From Oculina patagonica (lineage: Eukaryota), in assembly GCF_052425735.1 (NCBI RefSeq), contig NC_135763.1, positions 8,556,001 through 8,620,000 of the forward strand: 64,000 bases of DNA, read 5' to 3'. Of this stretch, positions 268-16,701 are shown piece after piece; within the stretch, counting starts at the first letter, position 1; every line of letters starts with the position of its first letter. The position numbers were made by a program, and so were the translations under genes. Under the pieces are notes generated by a model, which had not been told where the DNA came from, searched no databases, and saw nothing but the letters and a program-made list of their open reading frames with translations.

Positions 268-326
268 GTGTTTTATCAAGTCTAAAACACTCGGCTGCGC
301 CTCGTGTTTTAAACTTGATAAAACAC
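268..326. repeat. Hairpin-forming inverted repeat within an interspersed repeat end
   Basis: GTGTTTTATCAAGTCTAAAACAC (268-290) is the near-perfect reverse complement (1 mismatch) of GTGTTTTAAACTTGATAAAACAC (304-326), with a 13-nt spacer. Confidence 0.7.
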
Positions 327-918
327 TGCTGCTCATTTATTAAACATTACATAAATAATTACAATGTAGAATCTGCTTTCCTACCTTATAACTTGAGTGA
401 TGGTCACATTTTGTTTTATTTGTTTAAGCTCTAAAAAACTCATTAGAAACGTTCTTTTCAAGTTCACATGACATAAACTACCAGAAACACAACTCCACCA
501 TCCATGTTTTGAAAAAGTTAAAGTAATGTTCTTTTGCTTGGGCTTCACCATCACCATCACCATCATTCCTTTTTAAGAAAGCATTTCGTGTTTAAGCGTT
601 TTAACTTTTCAATCACACTGTTTCTAGTTTGATTTGTATGTAGGTTCATTCTAATTTTTATATTTTTATATTATTTTTACATATAGTAAACAGCGCTTTA
701 GAATATTTATAGTTTTAGTGCTTTATAAATGTATAAATTATTAATTATTATTATTATTATTATTAAATTATTACCATCACCATCATCGTCATTTTTAATC
801 AATTTTAAATGTTACATAGCATTAACATTATAAAAAATTAAATAATTAAATTATATGTAAAGTAGCCAAGGACTATTTAGAGAAATACAGCAACTGTATA
901 TTATATTTTTTTGGACAG

Positions 919-1891
919 TTCTGGTGACCGTGTGTCATTGTTGTGTGTGGACAAACATCCCACCCAGCCACACCTACTTGCAGCAGGAGGTCAGGATGGT
1001 GTACTTAGTATCTGGGACATGAGGCAAGAACTGTACCCTGTAACACTACTGGAGGCACATGCCGCAGAAAGTAAGACATTCTGTTCATACCTTTTTTCTT
1101 AAGAAGTGAATTTGGTTCTTGAAAGTCCTTAAAATTTGTTGTTTTTTGTGATAAAAGTGGAACGTATGTTGGTTTGTGTTTGGTTTTTGTTTTTTTTTTT
1201 TTTCCAAAAAACTTTTCATTTTTATAGAGCATAAAGCTATTCTAAGGATTGAAATTAGGTCCGCAGTGTCAATTTAATGATAATAATGTGAACTTTGACG
1301 TTATTCCAAACTGACATTTCAGCTCATCAAGCATTCTAAAAAAAACCACCCAAGGCGCAGACTCAAAAACTTCACGTACGCTATTACTAAAGTGTAACAT
1401 ATCAATGAGTTCGCAACAAAAATAGAAACAAACCCCCAGACTTTGCATTTGATAGACAAGATATCTGCTTTAAATATTAGCGTGAACATATCTTTCAATC
1501 TGTCAATGTCTTGTTTGCCTTTTTTTCATTTTCAACAGTATGGGAGGTTAAATTTCATCCACTCAGCCCAGACAACCTATTTACATGTTCAGAAGACGGA
1601 TCTCTCTGGCGCTGGGATGGTACATCTGTGGCTGTCCAAAGCACCACAGGGTTCCCAGGTGCCAGTAAAACTCACTTTGGTGGTATTAGTAATGGTGCCG
1701 GCGTGGGTGGAGGCTATGACAACATCAGTCCTTGGCTATCAGTGGACGCAACAAAACATAAAATGGAGACATTTTCCTTACTGCCGTATAACAGACTGTC
1801 AATCAACTCACTGGACATTCAATCAAGACACTTGTTAAGTGGAAGCGACTGTGAAGCGATTTTTATTGTCAAAGATCTGGTCATTAGATGA
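919..1891 (+). CDS. NUP43: Nucleoporin Nup43 (WD40), last two coding exons 919-1070 and 1539-1891; gene begins upstream
   Basis: Spliced translation SGDRVSLLCVDKHPTQPHLLAAGGQDGVLSIWDMRQ...EAHAAE|IWEVKFHPLSPDNLFTCSEDGSLWRWD matches the Nup43 C-terminal WD repeats as I recall them. Acceptor AG at 917-918, donor GTAAGA at 1071, acceptor CAG ending 1538 (phase 1), stop TGA 1889-1891, AATAAA at 1951. Confidence 0.93.
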
Positions 1892-2607
1892 TTACCTTTG
1901 CTACTATTATTATCAATTATAATTATTAATGTTCATAGCTTTTACTACTTAATAAATAGATCACTGTACAGGTAACGTTTGCACAATTTGCAGGGATAGA
2001 AAATCTCATAGCCTCTAACTGATCATCAGTAAGGGTGGGCTGATACCAGTTTTTCAAATCGATACCATACTGGCTTATTTGTATTGATATAAATAATAAT
2101 GGACTTTGCTGGTAAGCCTCGATAAGCACCCACTAGCTGTGGTACTGTTAAATGCTGTACCAGCTGTGGTACTGTTAAATGTTGAATGTTGTTAAGTTTT
2201 AGACAACAAGTCAAATATTTCATTTATTGACAAGAACATTGATAATAATTATTGTTACTCAGGCCTTGCTCAATATAAATATCTGATGCTGACCAGAAGA
2301 CTGCAGGCTCAGGTCACATTCAGAATCGAAAGCATCAATTTTTTCCAAGATTCGCTATTTTCTTGGTATTTTCTTGATATATATTGGTATTGGATCGGCC
2401 CATCCTAAATCAATAGCCATAGCCAGAATAGACAGCAGACATTTATAATATTGATATAATCAGAGAGCAAAAGGTGCCCTTTTTGGCAAATCCCTTGTCT
2501 CCCAACACCCAAAGAGCCAGAGTCTCATCTAATAGTGCAAGTACCACAACTATTGATGTCAACATCTACAAGATTGTCATTTTTCTTGATCAAAATAGGT
2601 ACTGGTA

Positions 2608-2988
2608 TACTATATTTATTCGATTAAGCGCCCTGGGCACTTATTAGATTTTCGGACCTTGAGAGTGGGCGCTTATTCAAGGTGGGTGCTTATCAAGGCT
2701 GGGCGCTTATTAAATTTTCACCATTTTCTGCAAGTAGTTAGTTCATTTTGCAACAAAATAACAACTACTAATAAAACATGAAGATGTACCAATTGAAAGA
2801 AGAATTTTATCTGTTATTTGAACGTTTCTGAAAAATACTTAGAAAACTTGAGAAGATTCTTAGTAGTTCTGAGTCAATTTCAATCTTATTGTCACTAAGG
2901 TATACTCAGTGTGTGCACTTCAGTTTTTTTTAAGTGGGGGTGGGCACTTATTTGAAGTTGGGCGCTTAATCGAATAAATATCATGGTA
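2608..2988. mobile_element. MITE, TACCGTATTT-type TIR family
   Basis: TIRs TATTTATTCGATTAAGCGCCC / GGGCGCTTAATCGAATAAATA; internal GGGCGCTTATT sub-repeats. Confidence 0.8.
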
Positions 2989-3297
2989 TTTTTAAAAAAC
3001 TAGCCTGTGAATCTCTTAATTTGGCTGTTATAACTGTTTTAATAATTATGTAGGTAATCTATTTTCTTTATTCCATGTTATGAGCAAAAGTAGACATTTG
3101 TATAAATTTAAATATATATGCAGTAGCTTGATCATTTTCTCATTTTTTTTGTGTGCAAAAAATCAAAGTAACATTTTGAAGGCCATTGTTTATTACTCAT
3201 TACATGACATTGCAGCTACTGTTTTTATTTAGCAACTTGTTATAAAATTAGTTATTACAATAAAATGTTACCAAGAAACCCCTTTTGCTAATTAATG

Positions 3298-6451: not shown

Positions 6452-6591
6452 CGTAATTACTGTAATGCTTTTATTTGCATAATGCAACATTATGGAAGTT
6501 AAAGCATCAGCTGGAGACGCTGTGAAATCCCCTTGCTGGATGTGGCCAATATAAATTTTTGTAGTACTGCAAATCACCGTCCCGTTTAGGG

Positions 6592-9500
6592 ATGCACCCC
6601 TCGGACAAGAGCGAGATGGGCAGCGAGCTCGATCTCTCGGTCAAGACGCCGGTAAAAATTTTGCGCGAAACGCCGCTAAAGTACCAATCGAGCGACCACA
6701 TAAACAATCTACAAGAAGAAAAAGAAAATTTCCTCAAGTTTGGTAAAGTGCCCCGGTTCAAGTTCGCTGGAGCCGTGGACTGGCTGGGTATAAACAAGAA
6801 AAAGGCTGAGATTCGATTTGATTTTTTTCAAGAAGCGCGTTATATTCTTGAGCGCGTGCGAGATGTTTTCGGCAGCGGTGATGTCTTTTTGGACGCGGCT
6901 TTTGGAGAGAGAATTACGCTAAGCCAAGCATCACAGACCGTCCTGCAGTATTTAAAATCGCATGGTTTGGATGGGTCGCTGAGCGTGTTTTGGACAAGTG
7001 ATCTCAACTGCAGCGGTAAGGTGTTATGGCAAGGACCGAATGTGCGATACAATCGACCCGAAGCACGGAAATTTACTCTATGGCTCAAGAAAAGCAGTGA
7101 AAACGTGTATCTTCGAGAACATGGGATAAAAAGTCTGATGGATCATGAAATTGGGACGCATTTTGTATCCTTTTTGTGTCGAGATTTCATCTAACCGGAT
7201 TTGAAAAGAAAGCTTAAGTGCCAGTAAAAATCTTTAAAGGGTATTTATGTTATATTTATTTAGCCCTACACCAGCGATAACTTTTTTATTTACATAAGAA
7301 TCATCACAGTGAGATTTATCTAATCAAATCAAAACCGTTTTCATGCTTCGACGCGGGTGGTGCTTTATACTGTTACTGTCTGTGAGCTATCGAGGTATTT
7401 TTCCGCTCAGGTATGTTAAAATTTTCTAGCAAGATATCACGAGCTAAAGTTCAAAGTTTTAGTGATGGTCGTTGTGGTTTTCAGATAACCGAAAAATTTT
7501 AAATGCGAGTTGACTTTTCTTCGACTTCTTGCCGGCTTAAATCGAAAATTTATATGTTGGGCTATAAAAACTTTAGTTTTTATTCCATCATAGATATAAA
7601 TGTGAAGCCAATTCAACAAGATAAAAATCTAGTGATGCGAGAAGATCGTTTTGTTATTTACTCTTTAATGGCCCAGCTCACAACGAGTCTCTAGTAGCTC
7701 AGTTGGTTAGAGCGATTCCCGTCGGGGACTCAGACTTTGTCCCATGCTCGTGTCATGTTGAATACTTCATCTTCATTATTTACTCTTTGTTTACATATTT
7801 CTGTTGTTTATGTAGCTGTCAGCCTTTTTGATAAGTTTCTTAATTCTGCAGGAAGGCTTCTGGATCATCATTTACACGACCAAACGAGTCTTTAAATTTC
7901 TTAGCTTCCTGGATACGTCACGTCCTTATTTCTTTTTGTTGCGTGATGTCACGCACTCATCAAGCCAACAAAGTGCGGCCATGTCGATTGCGCGATGTAG
8001 GCACTTCGATCGCGTTTCCCTCTTTGTATCAGATGCTGATTTCTCACTTTGTATTACAGGCCATAATATTTCGCGGCATTCTTCCAGTTGGTTACATATA
8101 TGCAATACCAAAACACTTATTGCTTAAATCTTGTCGATAGCTCTCTGTTGTAGCTTTCCTCAGCTGGTTAGAACGACGATTTAATTCGGTTTCTAACTTC
8201 TGTTTGTATCGGCAGATAGAAAGAAGCATAAACAATCATCATCATGATAATTAGTCCCTCGCAGCCGTTTTGGGACGTCACGCAACGCTCCCCCAGCGTT
8301 GCGTGACGTGGCTGCGAAGGAGACTACATGATAATTGGCATTTTGTGGTAACTGGTGTAAGCTTAATTAATCTCATTATAATCTTATCATGGTGTCCATA
8401 ATCACCTCCAAATCATTCCAACAGAGTGTGGTGGGTCTCTAACATTTCCGGGGTGGAAAATCGTGTTTTTGGAATGCTTGTATTTAGTGTGCCTAGAGGA
8501 TGTATTTTCACAGAAACCAAGTATCAGGAGAGGAGACCCCTTGCTACGTGTGATGATCTCTCTGCGGATGCATTTTTAAAAAGGCCTCAAATAAACAGAA
8601 ATTAAATGAAAAGATATGAATTTAGTTTGAATATAGACGACGAGCAATCCCTCTCTTTTCCTAGTCCGTCGAACATGAAGCGAAAAAAAAAAAAATAGCG
8701 CGACTGGAATAATAGCCGTGGAAAATTTGGACGCTTTTTTTTTTCGCGTCTCGCCCCACAGCCATTTCCACTCGCACTCTTATTTCGTTTTTCTACTCGC
8801 GCTCTTTTTTCACTTTACCCTTGACGGGACTGAGAATAAAGAGGGACTGCTCGCAGTCTAGTTTGAATAGGACTTCGTTCTCTGCTGGCCAGTGTCAAGT
8901 ACTTAAAAGACGGTCTGTTTTGGTACCTCTGAGGGGGTAGAAATTTTGTTCAGCCTCGCCCCACTGTATGGATTCTGATACCTTTTAGGGATGTTTTTAA
9001 ACTTTTAATAACATTTCCCCGAAGATCCCCGTCACTTTTATATATGGCATTCCCAATCCGCTCCTTGTTCAGTGTTTTATTCCCTGATCACAAAGACTGT
9101 CCGGGGGCTATCTCTTTCTAAATTAAATGCCCTTAACTTGTGATCCTCGGCATTAGCTTCGTGCCACGAATGATGGTTTGCAGCCGTGGTTCTCCAACAG
9201 GAAAAAGTTTGATTTGCGCACTCCCAGGTCTAACACAGGCAGGATCAACGAAGAAGGACTGGCGGCTATTAACACTATTTACCAGGCGCAAGTCAAGATG
9301 CTGTTTCTACCCGCACTACTATATTGTAAGTATTTTGAAAAGGGCAATGGTCACACAGTTTTGTATGAACGTGCCTTAAAAGTGTATTCGTACACTCGCC
9401 ATACTGTATAAAATAAGTGGTGTGCCTTATTTAATATTTTTAGGTCAGTATTTTCAACAGGAAATACCGGTATGGCTCTAAATTGTTGACAGGTATATCT

Positions 9501-11897
9501 ACTCCTAAATGTTTTCTTGTTTTACATTGTGGTGAATTATTAAGGGGAAAAGAATAAAGCGTTCGCTATAGAATGATGGAATGAGAAAGAAGCGCGCGCC
9601 ATCGCGATAGGCGAAGCATGTGAAAAGGCTCCCTATGTAAAAAAAAAAAAAAAAAATTGGAAAGCCAAGCGAGCCGAGAGAGATCTTTATCACCAGATCG
9701 CACTTGGCTCGCACCACTCGGCGTTTTTTTTCTCCCCATACTCCACTAAGGAGCCTCTTCACAGGTTACGATATGACGATGTCGTGTTGTTTTTTCCATT
9801 TTGAAGAAGATGCGAACATAGCACAAATATGAGAATCCGATGTGAAATGCTCCCCGAAAATTGATTCTTAACTCACAGTTTGCGGGTCTATGTTTATAGT
9901 CAAGCCGCGCAGCGCTATGAAAGCTTCCATACATTCGCTGTAAATCAGATTCTGCAAATCCTCTTACTAGCTTGTGACATCAATTTTAGAACATTTAGGA
10001 AGCTGGCTTTTAAAATCGTAGCTTCCCGTGCATTATGTTGTTCGTCGTTCTTTTTTGATTGCGCGCATTTTAGCGTGAGTTCGTTAAGGGAAACGTAGCC
10101 CCCTAACTAGAGAGTCTGGAACAAGCATAAAAACTAATTGAGAGAGAAAAAGAGAGATCATTTGGCGGTTACCGTAACGTAGTCATTTCCGTATTTCAGA
10201 TACTGCATGTATGTCGACTGAAATGTCCTTCAAGGAGCTGTTTGATCATCTGGCGATGTACATCTATGATCCAGAACAGCGTTGGAAGCAGGTTGTGCGA
10301 GCCAAGAGGTGCCTGCCGGACTGTAGCGACATAGGAGGCTGTGGATACGATCAGTGCTATTTTGAAGGTATGACGAGAATAGGCATGAAATACAGACTCG
10401 TGTTGCGTCCGCTGAGGTCAGCAAAATCGTAAAACTCTTTTAAATAAATCTTACATAGGTTCTTATATATTTTATCATCAGTATTTTTCAGCTACTTCTT
10501 CTTAAACCCTTAAGTTCCTGTGAAACATAAGTCGTCCACCAGAGATCTCCATCTTCCCCTGTCCTTGGCAAATACACAGTCTCTGTGGGCTGCCTTCCTG
10601 TCCCATGCCAGAACATGAGTTGATGAATTTACTCTCGTTGACGTTTCTGTAGCGGTTACAGTTTTTACGGGGTGGGGTTGCTGGCCCCACGCCCAACCCT
10701 CCTCCTTTACCCGGGCTTGGGACCGGCAGGGAACTGGCTGTGAGCCAGTTCCCAGGCGGAGGTTTTCAGCTAATACCTCAACTACTTCAAAGGGTTACAA
10801 CTTTCAGGGGTCGTTGTACTTTCATAGCAATGTTAAACTTATTTCTTAATATACTTTTGCGACAATTATCGCTTTTTCTATTTACTGGTTATGCCGTTTT
10901 GTGAATTTTTATTAGAGATATCCTTAATGTGAAATTTTTACAATAAAATTAATTAAAAAACTTAAAATTAAGTTAGGTAAGATGGTGAGCGTACCTCTGA
11001 AAAAACCTTACTACGCAACCTGAAGTTTATAATACAATAATGTTAAGTTGAAGTTCACAACGTCTGATCGATAGGGGTATCGAATGGTCTTTGCGAGCAT
11101 GCGAGCATTGACAAAAGTTAGCCTTGCGAGCAACGAGCACTTTTCAAAAAAGGCAACCTCCACTAAAAACCGAGCATGCGAGCACTTGTAAAAATTTGCG
11201 ACCACGAGCAAACAAGCACTCGCTAAAATTTTTCAAGCATTGCAAGCAGAAGCCTAATTTTTGATAGACCATTCATGGCCCCTATCGATAACCTTGAAAT
11301 CCTGGCAGGGATGTCCTGCCACTGTCTTTCGACCAGTCTAAATGACATTGTTAATATTGCTAGATTCGCGGATTTAAAGTAAGTCTTTAAAGAAAGGCAG
11401 TAAAATTTGTCTAAAAATTCCAATAAGTAGAACAATAGAGTGATTTTAAATCCAGCGCCCTTTCTTCTGTAGGTGCTGTCTTGATTCTACGCCAAGTCAA
11501 CGAAATCGATTTCAAGCTGTTGTACGCGGGAAAAATCTGCTGCGACGAACTGCAAAGAATCAGACGCATTGCGCGACAGGACTGCGTCAAGTTACCCCAC
11601 TTCTTAAAGGACATAGTATCTTACAAGAAAACACTTAACGAAATCGCTTTAACCAATGGACTCATACAGAAAATCAATAGACCTTTATCGTCTTGTCGAA
11701 ATACCGCTCGACCGAAACTCCGGAAAAAGAAAGCATTCGCCTCGCCGCAAGATCGAGGCTTCAGCTGTCCGGCTCAAAGATCACGGAGCAGTATCCCTTT
11801 TTCAACAGCGCGTCCGACTAGGATTTTATCTCGGCGATCCAGTATGTATAGGCGTCTGTGTACGAGTGCTGCTTCTTTCGCTCCGTTGTCATCTTAG
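6592..11897 (+). CDS. MATCAP: MATCAP/KIAA0895-like (DUF1704) tubulin tyrosine carboxypeptidase, ~444 aa; exons 6592-7164, 9157-9325, 10200-10367, 11473-11897
   Basis: Spliced product has the HEIGTH zinc motif (HEIGTHF|LRATNDGLQPW), EEGLA, ALLYYTACMSTEMSFKELF, VRAKR, YDQCYFEGAVLILR and IDFKLLYAGK, all colinear with the MATCAP family. Intron phases 0,1,1 are consistent. The start codon is uncertain, and MATCAP1 versus MATCAP2 orthology is not resolved. Confidence 0.88.
7667..7775 (+). mobile_element. Short tRNA-derived SINE fragment with target-site duplication
   Basis: A-box-like TAGCTCAGTTGGTTAGAGC; flanked by a 13-bp direct repeat TTATTTACTCTTT (7654-7666 and 7776-7788). Confidence 0.65.
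8252..8326. mobile_element. 75-bp TAG...CTA mini-MITE with 9-bp TSD
   Basis: TIR TAGTCCCTCGCAGCC / GGCTGCGAAGGAGACTA; internal palindrome ACGTCACGCAACGCT...AGCGTTGCGTGACGT; TSD CATGATAAT on both sides. A related partial copy lies at ~20110-20166. Confidence 0.8.
8634..8860. mobile_element. TAG...CTA MITE with 9-bp TSD, nested in an older repeat
   Basis: TIR TAGACGACGAGCAATCCCTCT / AGAGGGACTGCTCGCAGTCTA; TSD GTTTGAATA (8625-8633 and 8861-8869). Confidence 0.8.
10495..10762 (-). mobile_element. Non-autonomous RTE-LINE derivative (5' UTR fused to the 3' end of the ORF), 268 bp
   Basis: 10-bp TSD TTTTCAGCTA (10485-10494 and 10763-10772); (AAG)n tail. The 3' part translates AKDRGRWRSLVDDLCFTGT*, the typical RTE ORF terminus; the 5' part is a twister ribozyme core. 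Confidence 0.82.
10691..10764 (-). ncRNA. Twister ribozyme (P1-type core; 5' P1 strand lost)
   Basis: The minus strand reads AA-C-CUCC-GCC-U-[GGGAACUGGCU-CAC-AGCCAGUUCCC]-UGCCGGUCCCAAGCCCGGGUAAA-GGAG-GAGGG-UUGGGC. This matches the twister core GCCGGUCCCAAGCCCGGRUAAA...GAGGG, with P2 (CUCC/GGAG), an 11-bp P3 and P4 (CCGG/CCGG). Confidence 0.8.
11072..11284. mobile_element. MITE with TAGGGG...CCCCTA ends
   Basis: Imperfect TIR TAGGGGTATCGAATGGTCT / AGACCATTCATGGCCCCTA; TCGA on both flanks; internal GCGAGCA repeats. Confidence 0.65.
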
Positions 11898-15900: not shown

Positions 15901-16701
15901 ACAGCCAGAGCTTATCCCAGTTACTGTAGCATTAAGTGACTAGGAGTATTGCTACTCCCCCCTTGATGGGATGCTAGTCCATCGCAGGGTTGCCCCCCAG
16001 CAGTTAATTCGCCGGTACCCATTTATTTACCTGGGTGGAGAGAGGCACTGTGAGAGTAAAGTGTCTTACCCAAGAACACAACGCAGCACCCCAGACCAGG
16101 CCTCGAACCCGGGCCGTTCGACTCGGAGTCGAGCGTGCTAAGCATTAGGCCACCGCGCCTCCCAAGCAACTAAAAGCAAGAACTAATTAACATGGTAAAA
16201 GTGAGGAAAGGATATGTTAAGTTTACCAATTCTAACTTAATGGTCATTGTTTCAGTGGTGAATAGAAAGTCAGGTTTTGCACGGTTTTCGCTGCGTGCAG
16301 TTTTATATTAAACATTTCATTTTGTGTTAATACTGCAAAATGGTAACATCCAGTCAGTAGTTCACTCATTGATGGACTCTTTAACCAATCAAAACGCTTG
16401 ACGCCTCTTTCAGCCAATCACAAGAAGCGACGAGACAAAAAGGAAGCTACCCGTGTCTCGCGAGGCGCGTGGGCCCCCTGACATCACCCAGGTGCCCAAG
16501 GGGAAAGTAACAAATGTTCAGTTATCGGAACTGTTTGCCAAAAGACTGGAGGACCCCGACACATGGACGGATGAGAAACTGGCTAAATATTATCAACTCG
16601 ACCAGGAAGCTTTGTCTGCGGTTTTGAAGTACTTTAGTGACTACGCAATTGTTAAGAAGAGAAACTTACCTAGGCCCGAGGAGCCGACGTTTCTTGGTTG
16701 A
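12988..16701 (+). CDS. NDUFAF4: Complex I assembly factor NDUFAF4, ~178 aa; exons 12988-13132, 14031-14134, 16414-16701
   Basis: MGARVSR...KKPRAAPRHPS|QNEELFKERDRKDDDFLGRLKDLKID|...VPKGKVT...PDTWTDEKLAKYYQLDQEALSAVLKYF is colinear with NDUFAF4 (MG start, APRHPS, RKDxxL, PKGK, PxTWTxEK, LLKYF). Splice phases 1,0 are consistent. Confidence 0.9.
13329..13452. mobile_element. hAT-like mini-MITE (CAGGGCC...GGCCCTG)
   Basis: TIR CAGGGCCTTACCTA / TAGGTACGGCCCTG; no clean TSD. Confidence 0.55.
14245..14836. mobile_element. hAT-like MITE in NDUFAF4 intron 2
   Basis: TIR CAGGGCTCAAAATAA / TTATTTTGAGCCCTG; subterminal TGACCGG repeats; no exact 8-bp TSD. Confidence 0.7.
15868..16163 (-). mobile_element. 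tRNA-derived SINE with MIR/CORE-like central segment
   Basis: The minus strand begins GGGAGGCGCGGTGGCCTAATG (A box) ... GGTTCGAGGCC (B box), then GTGTTCTTGGGTAAGACACTTTACTCTC...CACCCAGGTAAATAAATGGGTAC. Degenerate relatives occur at ~13570-13800 and ~22480-22570. Confidence 0.8.

Follow-up and report, generated by a model that had tools for sequence, protein, structure and literature searches.

A 268-bp insertion in the genome of the coral Oculina patagonica most probably represents a one-off copy, dead on arrival and internally deleted, of a coral retrotransposon family of the RTE type, which is approximately 3.2 kb long and whose 5′ untranslated region (UTR) begins with a twister ribozyme of type P1 (the probability of this reading is put at about 0.85). 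The insertion is located in a 64,000-nt stretch of contig NC_135763.1 (positions 8,556,001 to 8,620,000, assembly GCF_052425735.1), in the following termed the window, to which the coordinates refer. The data support an insertion by target-primed reverse transcription (TPRT), derived from an RTE-like long interspersed nuclear element (LINE) that bears the twister at its extreme 5′ end. As judged from the sequence, they also support that the 5′ boundaries of the family are set at the twister scissile site N^AA-CUCC.

Structure of the insertion

The insertion covers positions 10495–10762 and is bounded by a perfect 10-bp target-site duplication (TSD; 10 of 10 nucleotides identical, not extendable). 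On the plus strand, the duplication reads TTTTCAGCTA at 10485–10494 and 10763–10772. An earlier note on this DNA had described a TSD-bounded insertion antisense in a MATCAP intron, composed of a twister, a hairpin, the end of an open reading frame (ORF), and an AAG tail; all of these parts and their positions were confirmed. The element features, all on the minus strand, are given in 5′ to 3′ order:

10763..10772, minus strand: TSD copy at the 5′ end of the element, TAGCTGAAAA, 10 of 10 nucleotides identical to 10485..10494
10693..10762, minus strand: twister ribozyme body carried by the element (match to RF03160)
10669..10692, minus strand: conserved GC-rich hairpin directly 3′ of the twister, GCGUGGGG / CCAGCAA / CCCCACCC
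10572..10668, minus strand: rest of the family 5′ UTR (approximately 100 nt) through the AT of the ORF start codon, aligning to the full-length reference up to position 308
10570..10571, minus strand: TT filler at the internal-deletion junction, identified by comparison with both sides of a full-length copy
10510..10569, minus strand: 19 final codons and TAA of the ORF for apurinic/apyrimidinic endonuclease and reverse transcriptase (APE-RT), AKDRGRWRSLVDDLCFTGT plus stop, in frame with the full-length ORF's C-terminus
10495..10509, minus strand: 9-nt 3′ UTR GGGUUUAAG and short AAGAAG tail; (AAGTC/AAGTA)n in other copies
10485..10494, minus strand: TSD copy at the 3′ end of the element, identical to 10763..10772

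The element-borne twister begins with C-CUCCGCC at 10762. Its body consists of this odd C (AA in the family), P2 (CUCC), GCC, an 11-bp P3 hairpin, and P4 with the loop GGUCCCAAGCCCGG, followed 3′ of P4 by GUAAA, GGAG, GAGGG, and the orphan 3′ P1 strand UUGG. The remaining 5′ UTR of the window copy (10572–10668) contains a private 5-nt insertion. The start codon ATG corresponds to positions 307–309 of the full-length reference, and approximately 2.9 kb of the ORF are gone at the junction. The 3′ end of the element reads GGGTTTAAG followed by AAGAAG.

The RTE-type family

Genome comparisons were made against the 529-Mb assembly, using the 288-mer around the window element as BLAST query. The 5′ part (query positions 11 or 12 to 201, in one locus from 26 only) was found at six other loci with 90–95% identity and the 3′ part (query positions 204–272) at no fewer than 30 loci with 91–99% identity. 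At two loci, L031 and L032, both parts are present approximately 3.1 kb apart, and both ends are common to the window copy (93–96% identity). Between the two parts, the domains Exo_endo_phos, RVT_1, and DUF6451 follow in this order; the ORF pieces are split by stops or frameshifts, and the domain searches were done per piece. The twister-headed RTE origin proposed in the earlier note is supported, with L031 and L032 as full-length relatives, albeit with broken ORFs.

The architecture fits an RTE-type element: approximately 3.2 kb with a single APE-RT ORF, no ORF1, a 5′ UTR of approximately 185 nt, and a 3′ UTR of 9 nt. The tails are (AAGTC/AAGTA)n or (AAG)n and not poly(A), and the TSDs comprise 8–12 bp of differing sequence. 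The twister is separated from the AUG by approximately 114–119 nt. Dozens of family 3′ ends are 97–100% identical, which indicates recent activity of the family. Sequencing runs labelled ‘coral metagenome’ contain the family as well, and an Atlas look-up of the LINE returned generic RVT_1/APE/DUF6451 clusters.

The 5′ ends and the ribozyme cleavage site

The copies of the window subfamily start with AA-CUCCGCC, and the sequence upstream is unrelated from copy to copy. Among six copies of this subfamily, the pairwise identity is 0.94 from P2 on and 0.24 in the 20 nt preceding AA; a second subfamily shows 0.97 and 0.27 for these two regions. The same break in similarity at AA was found in at least eight twister subfamilies. 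The boundary at the cleavage site suggested earlier is supported. Where both ends of a copy were readable, the gap between TSD and AA amounted to 0–3 nt: the TSD ends exactly at AA in L034, is followed by T and then AA in L032 and by CC and then AA in L070, and adjoins GTC in place of AA in L033. At the level of the family, the twister is situated at the extreme 5′ end, the elements start with 5′-AA, and the TSD lies at the cleavage site; the window copy deviates with C or AC.

A T precedes AA in 14 of 20 loci (A1 column 5). These loci were retrieved with a covariance model that rewards U at this position, and in the subfamily found by BLAST the T is present in two of six copies. Only one TSD, that of L032, places the T outside the duplication. 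The T could result from non-templated A addition by the reverse transcriptase, from a target preference, or from ascertainment by the Rfam model. Non-templated A addition regenerating UAA is not claimed here because of the model bias, the two of six copies in the BLAST subfamily, and the single informative TSD.

Twister identity and structure

Using Infernal, the twister-P1 model (RF03160) matched positions 10768–10693 of the minus strand over its full length with 57.1 bits (E-value 2.5e-12 for the local stretch and 6.9e-10 genome-wide). The gathering score of RF03160 is 67.2 bits; a default Rfam scan of the whole window at gathering thresholds was blank, and it took E-value thresholds applied to a short stretch to reveal the match. 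The twister assignment of the earlier note was thus recovered as a significant full-model match, although one that does not reach the gathering score. The shortfall is due to P1 and L1, the flank-derived parts, which fit poorly. The alignment places part of the 5′-end TSD copy at model positions 1–6, where it serves as a surrogate for the 5′ P1 strand and the nucleotides around the scissile site. Via the TSD, the flanking UGAA stands opposite UUGG and forms three of four pairs with one G·G mismatch. L1 reads AAC instead of the UAA of the model; of 20 loci, 15 possess the AA. All core nucleotides of the window copy (GCC after P2, GGUCCCAAGCCCGG, UAAA, and GAGGG) match the model.

A search of the genome with RF03160 resulted in 28 matches, one of them above the threshold (70.3 bits). 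Approximately 20 of the 28 represent at least eight subfamilies with the same core and differing P3 stems. With a custom covariance model lacking the 5′ P1 strand (R1), 60 genomic matches were obtained, approximately 24 of them with at least 59 bits. Pairing and covariation were quantified over 20 genomic loci. P2 was paired in 97.5% of cells, P3 in 87.6% with compensatory changes at 10 of 12 pairs, and P4 in 88%. The pseudoknots T1 (CCC:GGG, 96.5%) and T2 (GC:GC, 92.5%) are nearly invariant, for which reason covariation is silent about them, neither for nor against. None of 500 shuffles reached the covariation score of the twister. P1 formed with the flank was paired in 47% of cells, which equals the chance expectation for the partners U and G. 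The 5′ P1 strand is therefore not part of the element, as the earlier note had proposed, while the 3′ strand is retained.

The orphan UUGG is conserved in 16 of the 20 coral loci and in published schistosome twisters, although what faces it in P1 is random flank. The hairpin downstream of the twister also covaries (88% of cells paired, 5 of 9 pairs compensatory, score reached by 0 of 500 shuffles) and appears in the minimum free energy fold (z −2.9). Its base can pair the GG of UUGG (10693–10694) with the downstream CC. As a lead, the conservation of UUGG suggests a role beyond P1.

Internally deleted copies

The junction between 5′ UTR and ORF end of the window copy was found at no second locus of the assembly by BLAST. 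Four other short copies were identified, and the five copies have five different junctions with fillers of 0–7 nt and no microhomology. In the numbering of the full-length copy (start codon side first), the junctions are as follows; the genome-wide junction search covered the window copy and L033.

Window copy: 308 to 3235, unique in the genome
L033: 356 to 3202, unique in the genome
L034: 371 to 3194
L037: 412 to 3152, also 5′-truncated
L036: 557 to 3074, also 5′-truncated

All five deletions are strictly internal, remove 2.5–2.9 kb of the 3.2-kb element, and spare both termini. Short derivatives account for five of the approximately eight copies that retain the 5′ UTR. They fall into two sublineages distinguished by diagnostic 5′ UTR sites (GGGACAGG versus GGGAGAGG), each of which also contains long copies, indicating that the short copies arose independently. 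A single shrinking non-autonomous lineage is ruled out by these markers.

The five junction pairs are perfectly nested despite their independent origins (n = 5). Long-range pairing of the 5′ and 3′ RNA regions was considered as a cause of the nesting and rejected, as the best duplex was no better than that of shuffled sequences (z −0.54). A splice-like removal of the ORF was rejected as well, because its boundaries do not yield the observed junction. In L034 (G000:C9:13352800-13354300), a C-rich insertion of approximately 190 bp with CCCCC runs interrupts the ORF-end segment.

Proposed origin of the window copy and alternative explanations

In the favoured explanation, a source copy with no demonstrated promoter of its own would be transcribed together with its upstream flank. 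The twister would cut this transcript between N and AA just 5′ of P2, as the 5′ boundaries suggest, and the retrotransposing RNA would start with 5′-AACUCCGCC and retain the ribozyme minus its 5′ P1 strand. Experimental proof that a twister cut releases the RNA comes from Schistosoma Perere-3 only (PMC8501958). The endonuclease and reverse transcriptase would then insert the cDNA by TPRT, giving a TSD that, as the sequences show, comprises 9–12 bp and lies within 0–3 nt of the cleavage site. Copying of the window element would have been confined to the 5′ UTR (approximately 190 nt), the final 69 nt, and the tail. A jump of the reverse transcriptase on its template, taking it from near the 3′ end to around the start codon, is slightly favoured as the origin of this short form. 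The resulting copy is approximately 5% diverged from its relatives and has no ORF, with the catalytic core intact. It is probably inert, since the scissile loop reads AAC-CUCC in place of NAA-CUCC, the element is antisense to the host gene, and it encodes nothing; the earlier note had likewise considered it dead, and the missing consensus AA agrees with this. The accompanying claim that a copy is active only if the flank rebuilds P1 was overstated: the composition of P1 modulates the cleavage rate, yet inefficient cleavage is possible without P1 (PMC8501958).

Several points weigh against this explanation. Self-cleavage in the coral is predicted from the 5′ boundaries, and these junctions are not all exact, since some copies have T, CC, or GTC separating the TSD from the consensus start. 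The 5′ end of the window copy itself is ambiguous and can be read as a 10-bp TSD with an extra C and loss of AA, or as a TSD of 9 bp followed by A and then by C substituted for A. Its twister remains under the Rfam gathering threshold. The RNA data are uninformative: two runs with a related species label contained 2 and 0 raw reads on the element, and RNA-seq contigs from related corals (Logan) span the element but cannot show RNA ends. In one poly(A) RNA-seq contig from a related coral, unrelated upstream sequence runs into the element at L032 position 969. This contig would fit co-transcription with the flank if it represents RNA; DNA may be present in the library. The assignment to the RTE clade is probable from the architecture and the shared ribozyme rather than from a reverse transcriptase tree. 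Finally, a single genome is compatible with a deletion during as well as after insertion.

The latter point concerns a full-length RTE that inserted normally and from which an ordinary genomic deletion later removed approximately 2.9 kb. The TSD would be retained either way, the 2-nt filler without microhomology resembles that of end-joining deletions, and approximately 5% divergence means that time was available. Random deletions of such size would, however, often reach the flanks, whereas five independent copies have all lost a strictly internal segment and kept their termini. Template switching during reverse transcription, or a preference for completing short templates, fits the pattern better than random genomic deletion does, and a later deletion appears rather doubtful, without being far-fetched. 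Far less probable is the proposal of the earlier note that the 268-mer belongs to a promoter-less family resembling short interspersed nuclear elements (SINEs), freed by the twister from read-through RNA and mobilised in trans by an RTE LINE. The 268-mer does retain exactly the parts required in cis, namely the 5′ UTR with its ribozyme and the tailed 3′ end of the LINE; complete 5′ ends and TSDs are found in three short copies (window, L033, and L034), and short forms are frequent among the copies retaining the 5′ UTR. A propagating family should display several insertions with different TSDs and one junction, but the window junction occurs once in 529 Mb, the junction of L033 is unique too, and the other short copies differ in theirs. 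Together with the independent origins in two sublineages and the missing AA at the scissile site of the window copy, this leaves the SINE-like family largely refuted for this assembly.

Internal promoters that start transcription at nucleotide 1 are common among LINEs. The AACUCC 5′ end might accordingly be the start site of such a promoter and the twister a conserved structure of the 5′ UTR that serves a different purpose, for instance in translation or in the assembly of a ribonucleoprotein (RNP). Besides this habit of LINEs and the sequence-derived nature of the cleavage in the coral, the conservation of the orphan UUGG and of the next hairpin in elements whose P1 cannot form is in favour of selection beyond P1. 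Nevertheless, in many subfamilies with a fully conserved catalytic core, boundary and scissile phosphate agree to the exact nucleotide, and cleavage at N^AA by near-identical Perere-3 ribozymes has been demonstrated both in reporter cells and in vitro (PMC8501958). The contig entering L032 would, if RNA, also fit co-transcription with the flank. An internal promoter is thus considered very unlikely.

As an extension of the favoured explanation, the cleaved twister and the covarying hairpin might together constitute a 5′ module of RTE RNAs that is conserved and functional, with the nested deletions arising from RNA ends joined in an RNP. Such a module could, for example, support translation independent of a cap or provide the reverse transcriptase RNP with a handle, and the nested UTR-to-UTR deletions (five of five) could be produced by template switching between two RNA ends held in the RNP. 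Taken jointly, these assumptions are speculative and improbable as a whole.

Comparison with known systems

A twister ‘T-variant’ has been described at the 5′ end of Perere-3, an RTE-clade element from Schistosoma mansoni (Liu et al., Nucleic Acids Research 2021; PMC8501958), and the schistosome precedent invoked by the earlier note is therefore real. Cleavage of the Perere-3 twisters at N^AA takes place in reporter cells as well as in vitro, and any N before AA is accepted. Variants with no A or one A at the cleavage site (0A and 1A) do not cleave, and the second A is nearly invariant. The TSD adjoins the cleavage site and supplies the 5′ P1 strand, and the distance from twister to AUG is approximately 112 or 147 nt (PMC8501958). 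The coral family resembles Perere-3 in the extreme 5′ twister upstream of a single APE+RT ORF, the similar AUG spacing, and the short-repeat 3′ tail. All twister segments except P3 are identical to listed S. mansoni ones, TSDs abut N^AA, and the 5′ P1 strand comes from the flank or the TSD. The two differ in their hosts, a flatworm and a coral (Cnidaria), and in abundance, with more than 800 ribozyme copies in the former and dozens in the latter. The window copy is in addition an internal-deletion derivative with AAC instead of NAA, a variant outside the set of Liu et al. In the coral, flank-P1 pairing was measured and equals chance, and a covarying hairpin engages the GG of UUGG; such a hairpin was not looked for in PMC8501958.

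Truncated, active twisters have been reported as conserved at the 5′ end of RTE-superfamily elements in a one-sentence remark citing work in preparation (de la Pena et al., Cells 2020; PMC7761336); the roles proposed there are the processing of RNA out of upstream transcripts and the promotion of translation. This is the same generalisation, including a twister without its 5′ part, and the sentence offers no taxa, sequences, or deletion derivatives for comparison. Ribozymes similar to that of hepatitis delta virus (HDV) sit at the 5′ terminus of R2, RTE, and further LINEs (Eickbush 2010; Ruminski 2011; cited through PMC8501958 and PMC7936874). As these citing papers present them, such LINEs are likewise promoter-less, co-transcribed with upstream sequence, and freed by a 5′ ribozyme that stays on the element. 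On the same basis, the HDV-like ribozymes cleave at the first nucleotide of their own sequence and are passed on in full, whereas a type-P1 twister cuts after the first helix strand, which is lost with each copy. Retrozymes and the SINE-like hammerhead elements Sm-alpha and Sj-alpha are short non-autonomous retroelements that bear ribozymes (PMC4918200, PMC7229834, PMC6765202). The window element shares with them its small size, the lack of coding capacity, a self-cleaving ribozyme, and the reliance on autonomous machinery. In contrast to these multi-copy hammerhead families, which often involve circular RNA or pol III promoters, it is a singleton deletion product of a twister LINE. A literature search found no description of a twister-headed RTE in corals or other cnidarians.

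Other twister loci in the assembly

Further twister subfamilies (L056, L058, and L062–L065, e.g., G000:C2:37175788-37175842) have a P3 shrunk to a 3- to 6-nt linker. Most of them contain a segment of the GAUGAGAAA type before GGAG, and L062–L064 carry the same downstream hairpin after the twister. These P3-reduced twisters are probably the heads of other RTE lineages. L053 (G000:C671:71632-71683) is a minimal, GC-rich twister of 52 nt whose P1 (GACC/GGUC) is perfect; it lies on a small unplaced contig. Its surroundings are GC-rich, unlike coral repeats, and it may originate from a non-host organism in the assembly.

A different, AT-rich repeat of more than 3 kb, 97–99.6% identical among at least six loci, is represented by L043–L048 (e.g., G000:C1:7338476-7338561, C5:2067972-2068057, C6:6962650-6962735, and C12:7251442-7251527). 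In the 3 kb read, it contains no ORF of 100 or more amino acids. The twister of this repeat is internal and complete (86 nt), with a genuine P1 (CAGU/GCUG) and UAA. As the upstream sequence is conserved, it is neither terminal nor truncated by cleavage.

Host gene and neighbouring ORF

On the plus strand, exons at approximately 6565–7191 and 10178–10400 match the human KIAA0895L/MATCAP chains 7z5g and 7z6s (E-values 2e-4 and 8.5e-9), and the ORF 11481–11897 shows a weak match to the C-terminal end of the Pfam MATCAP family. The exons adjacent to the element are:

10178..10400 (approximate ends), plus strand: upstream host exon of the MATCAP/KIAA0895L homologue (7z5g_A residues 209–268, E-value 8.5e-9)
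11481..11650 (approximate ends), plus strand: downstream C-terminal host exon (Pfam PF08014 positions 311–356 of 365, E-value 0.0046, below the cut-off)

Since the exons flank the element on the plus strand, the element is intronic and antisense to the MATCAP homologue. The host exons were compared with the references one by one and never joined. A six-frame search of the genome with Pfam MATCAP gave no match, and Pfam searches of ORFs beginning with a start codon missed two exons. Further downstream, an ORF at 16453–16701 (plus strand) matches Pfam UPF0240 (E-value 3.7e-14) and, more weakly, MRP-L20. It is probably an exon of the neighbouring gene downstream of the MATCAP homologue.

Significance

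The window itself is ordinary, an intron with an inert transposable element fragment, and the mechanism is already published for flatworms; the coral case is a new example and not a new mechanism. It extends the twister-processed RTE elements from flatworms to a reef-building cnidarian with the same catalytic core and the same loss of P1. For annotation, it provides a rule for the true 5′ end of such elements, which is to be set at AA-CUCCGCC. That the flank-derived P1 pairs no better than chance over the 20 loci bears on the importance of P1 in vivo. Altogether, the coral family supports the view that most animal twisters are 5′-processing devices of RTE LINEs.

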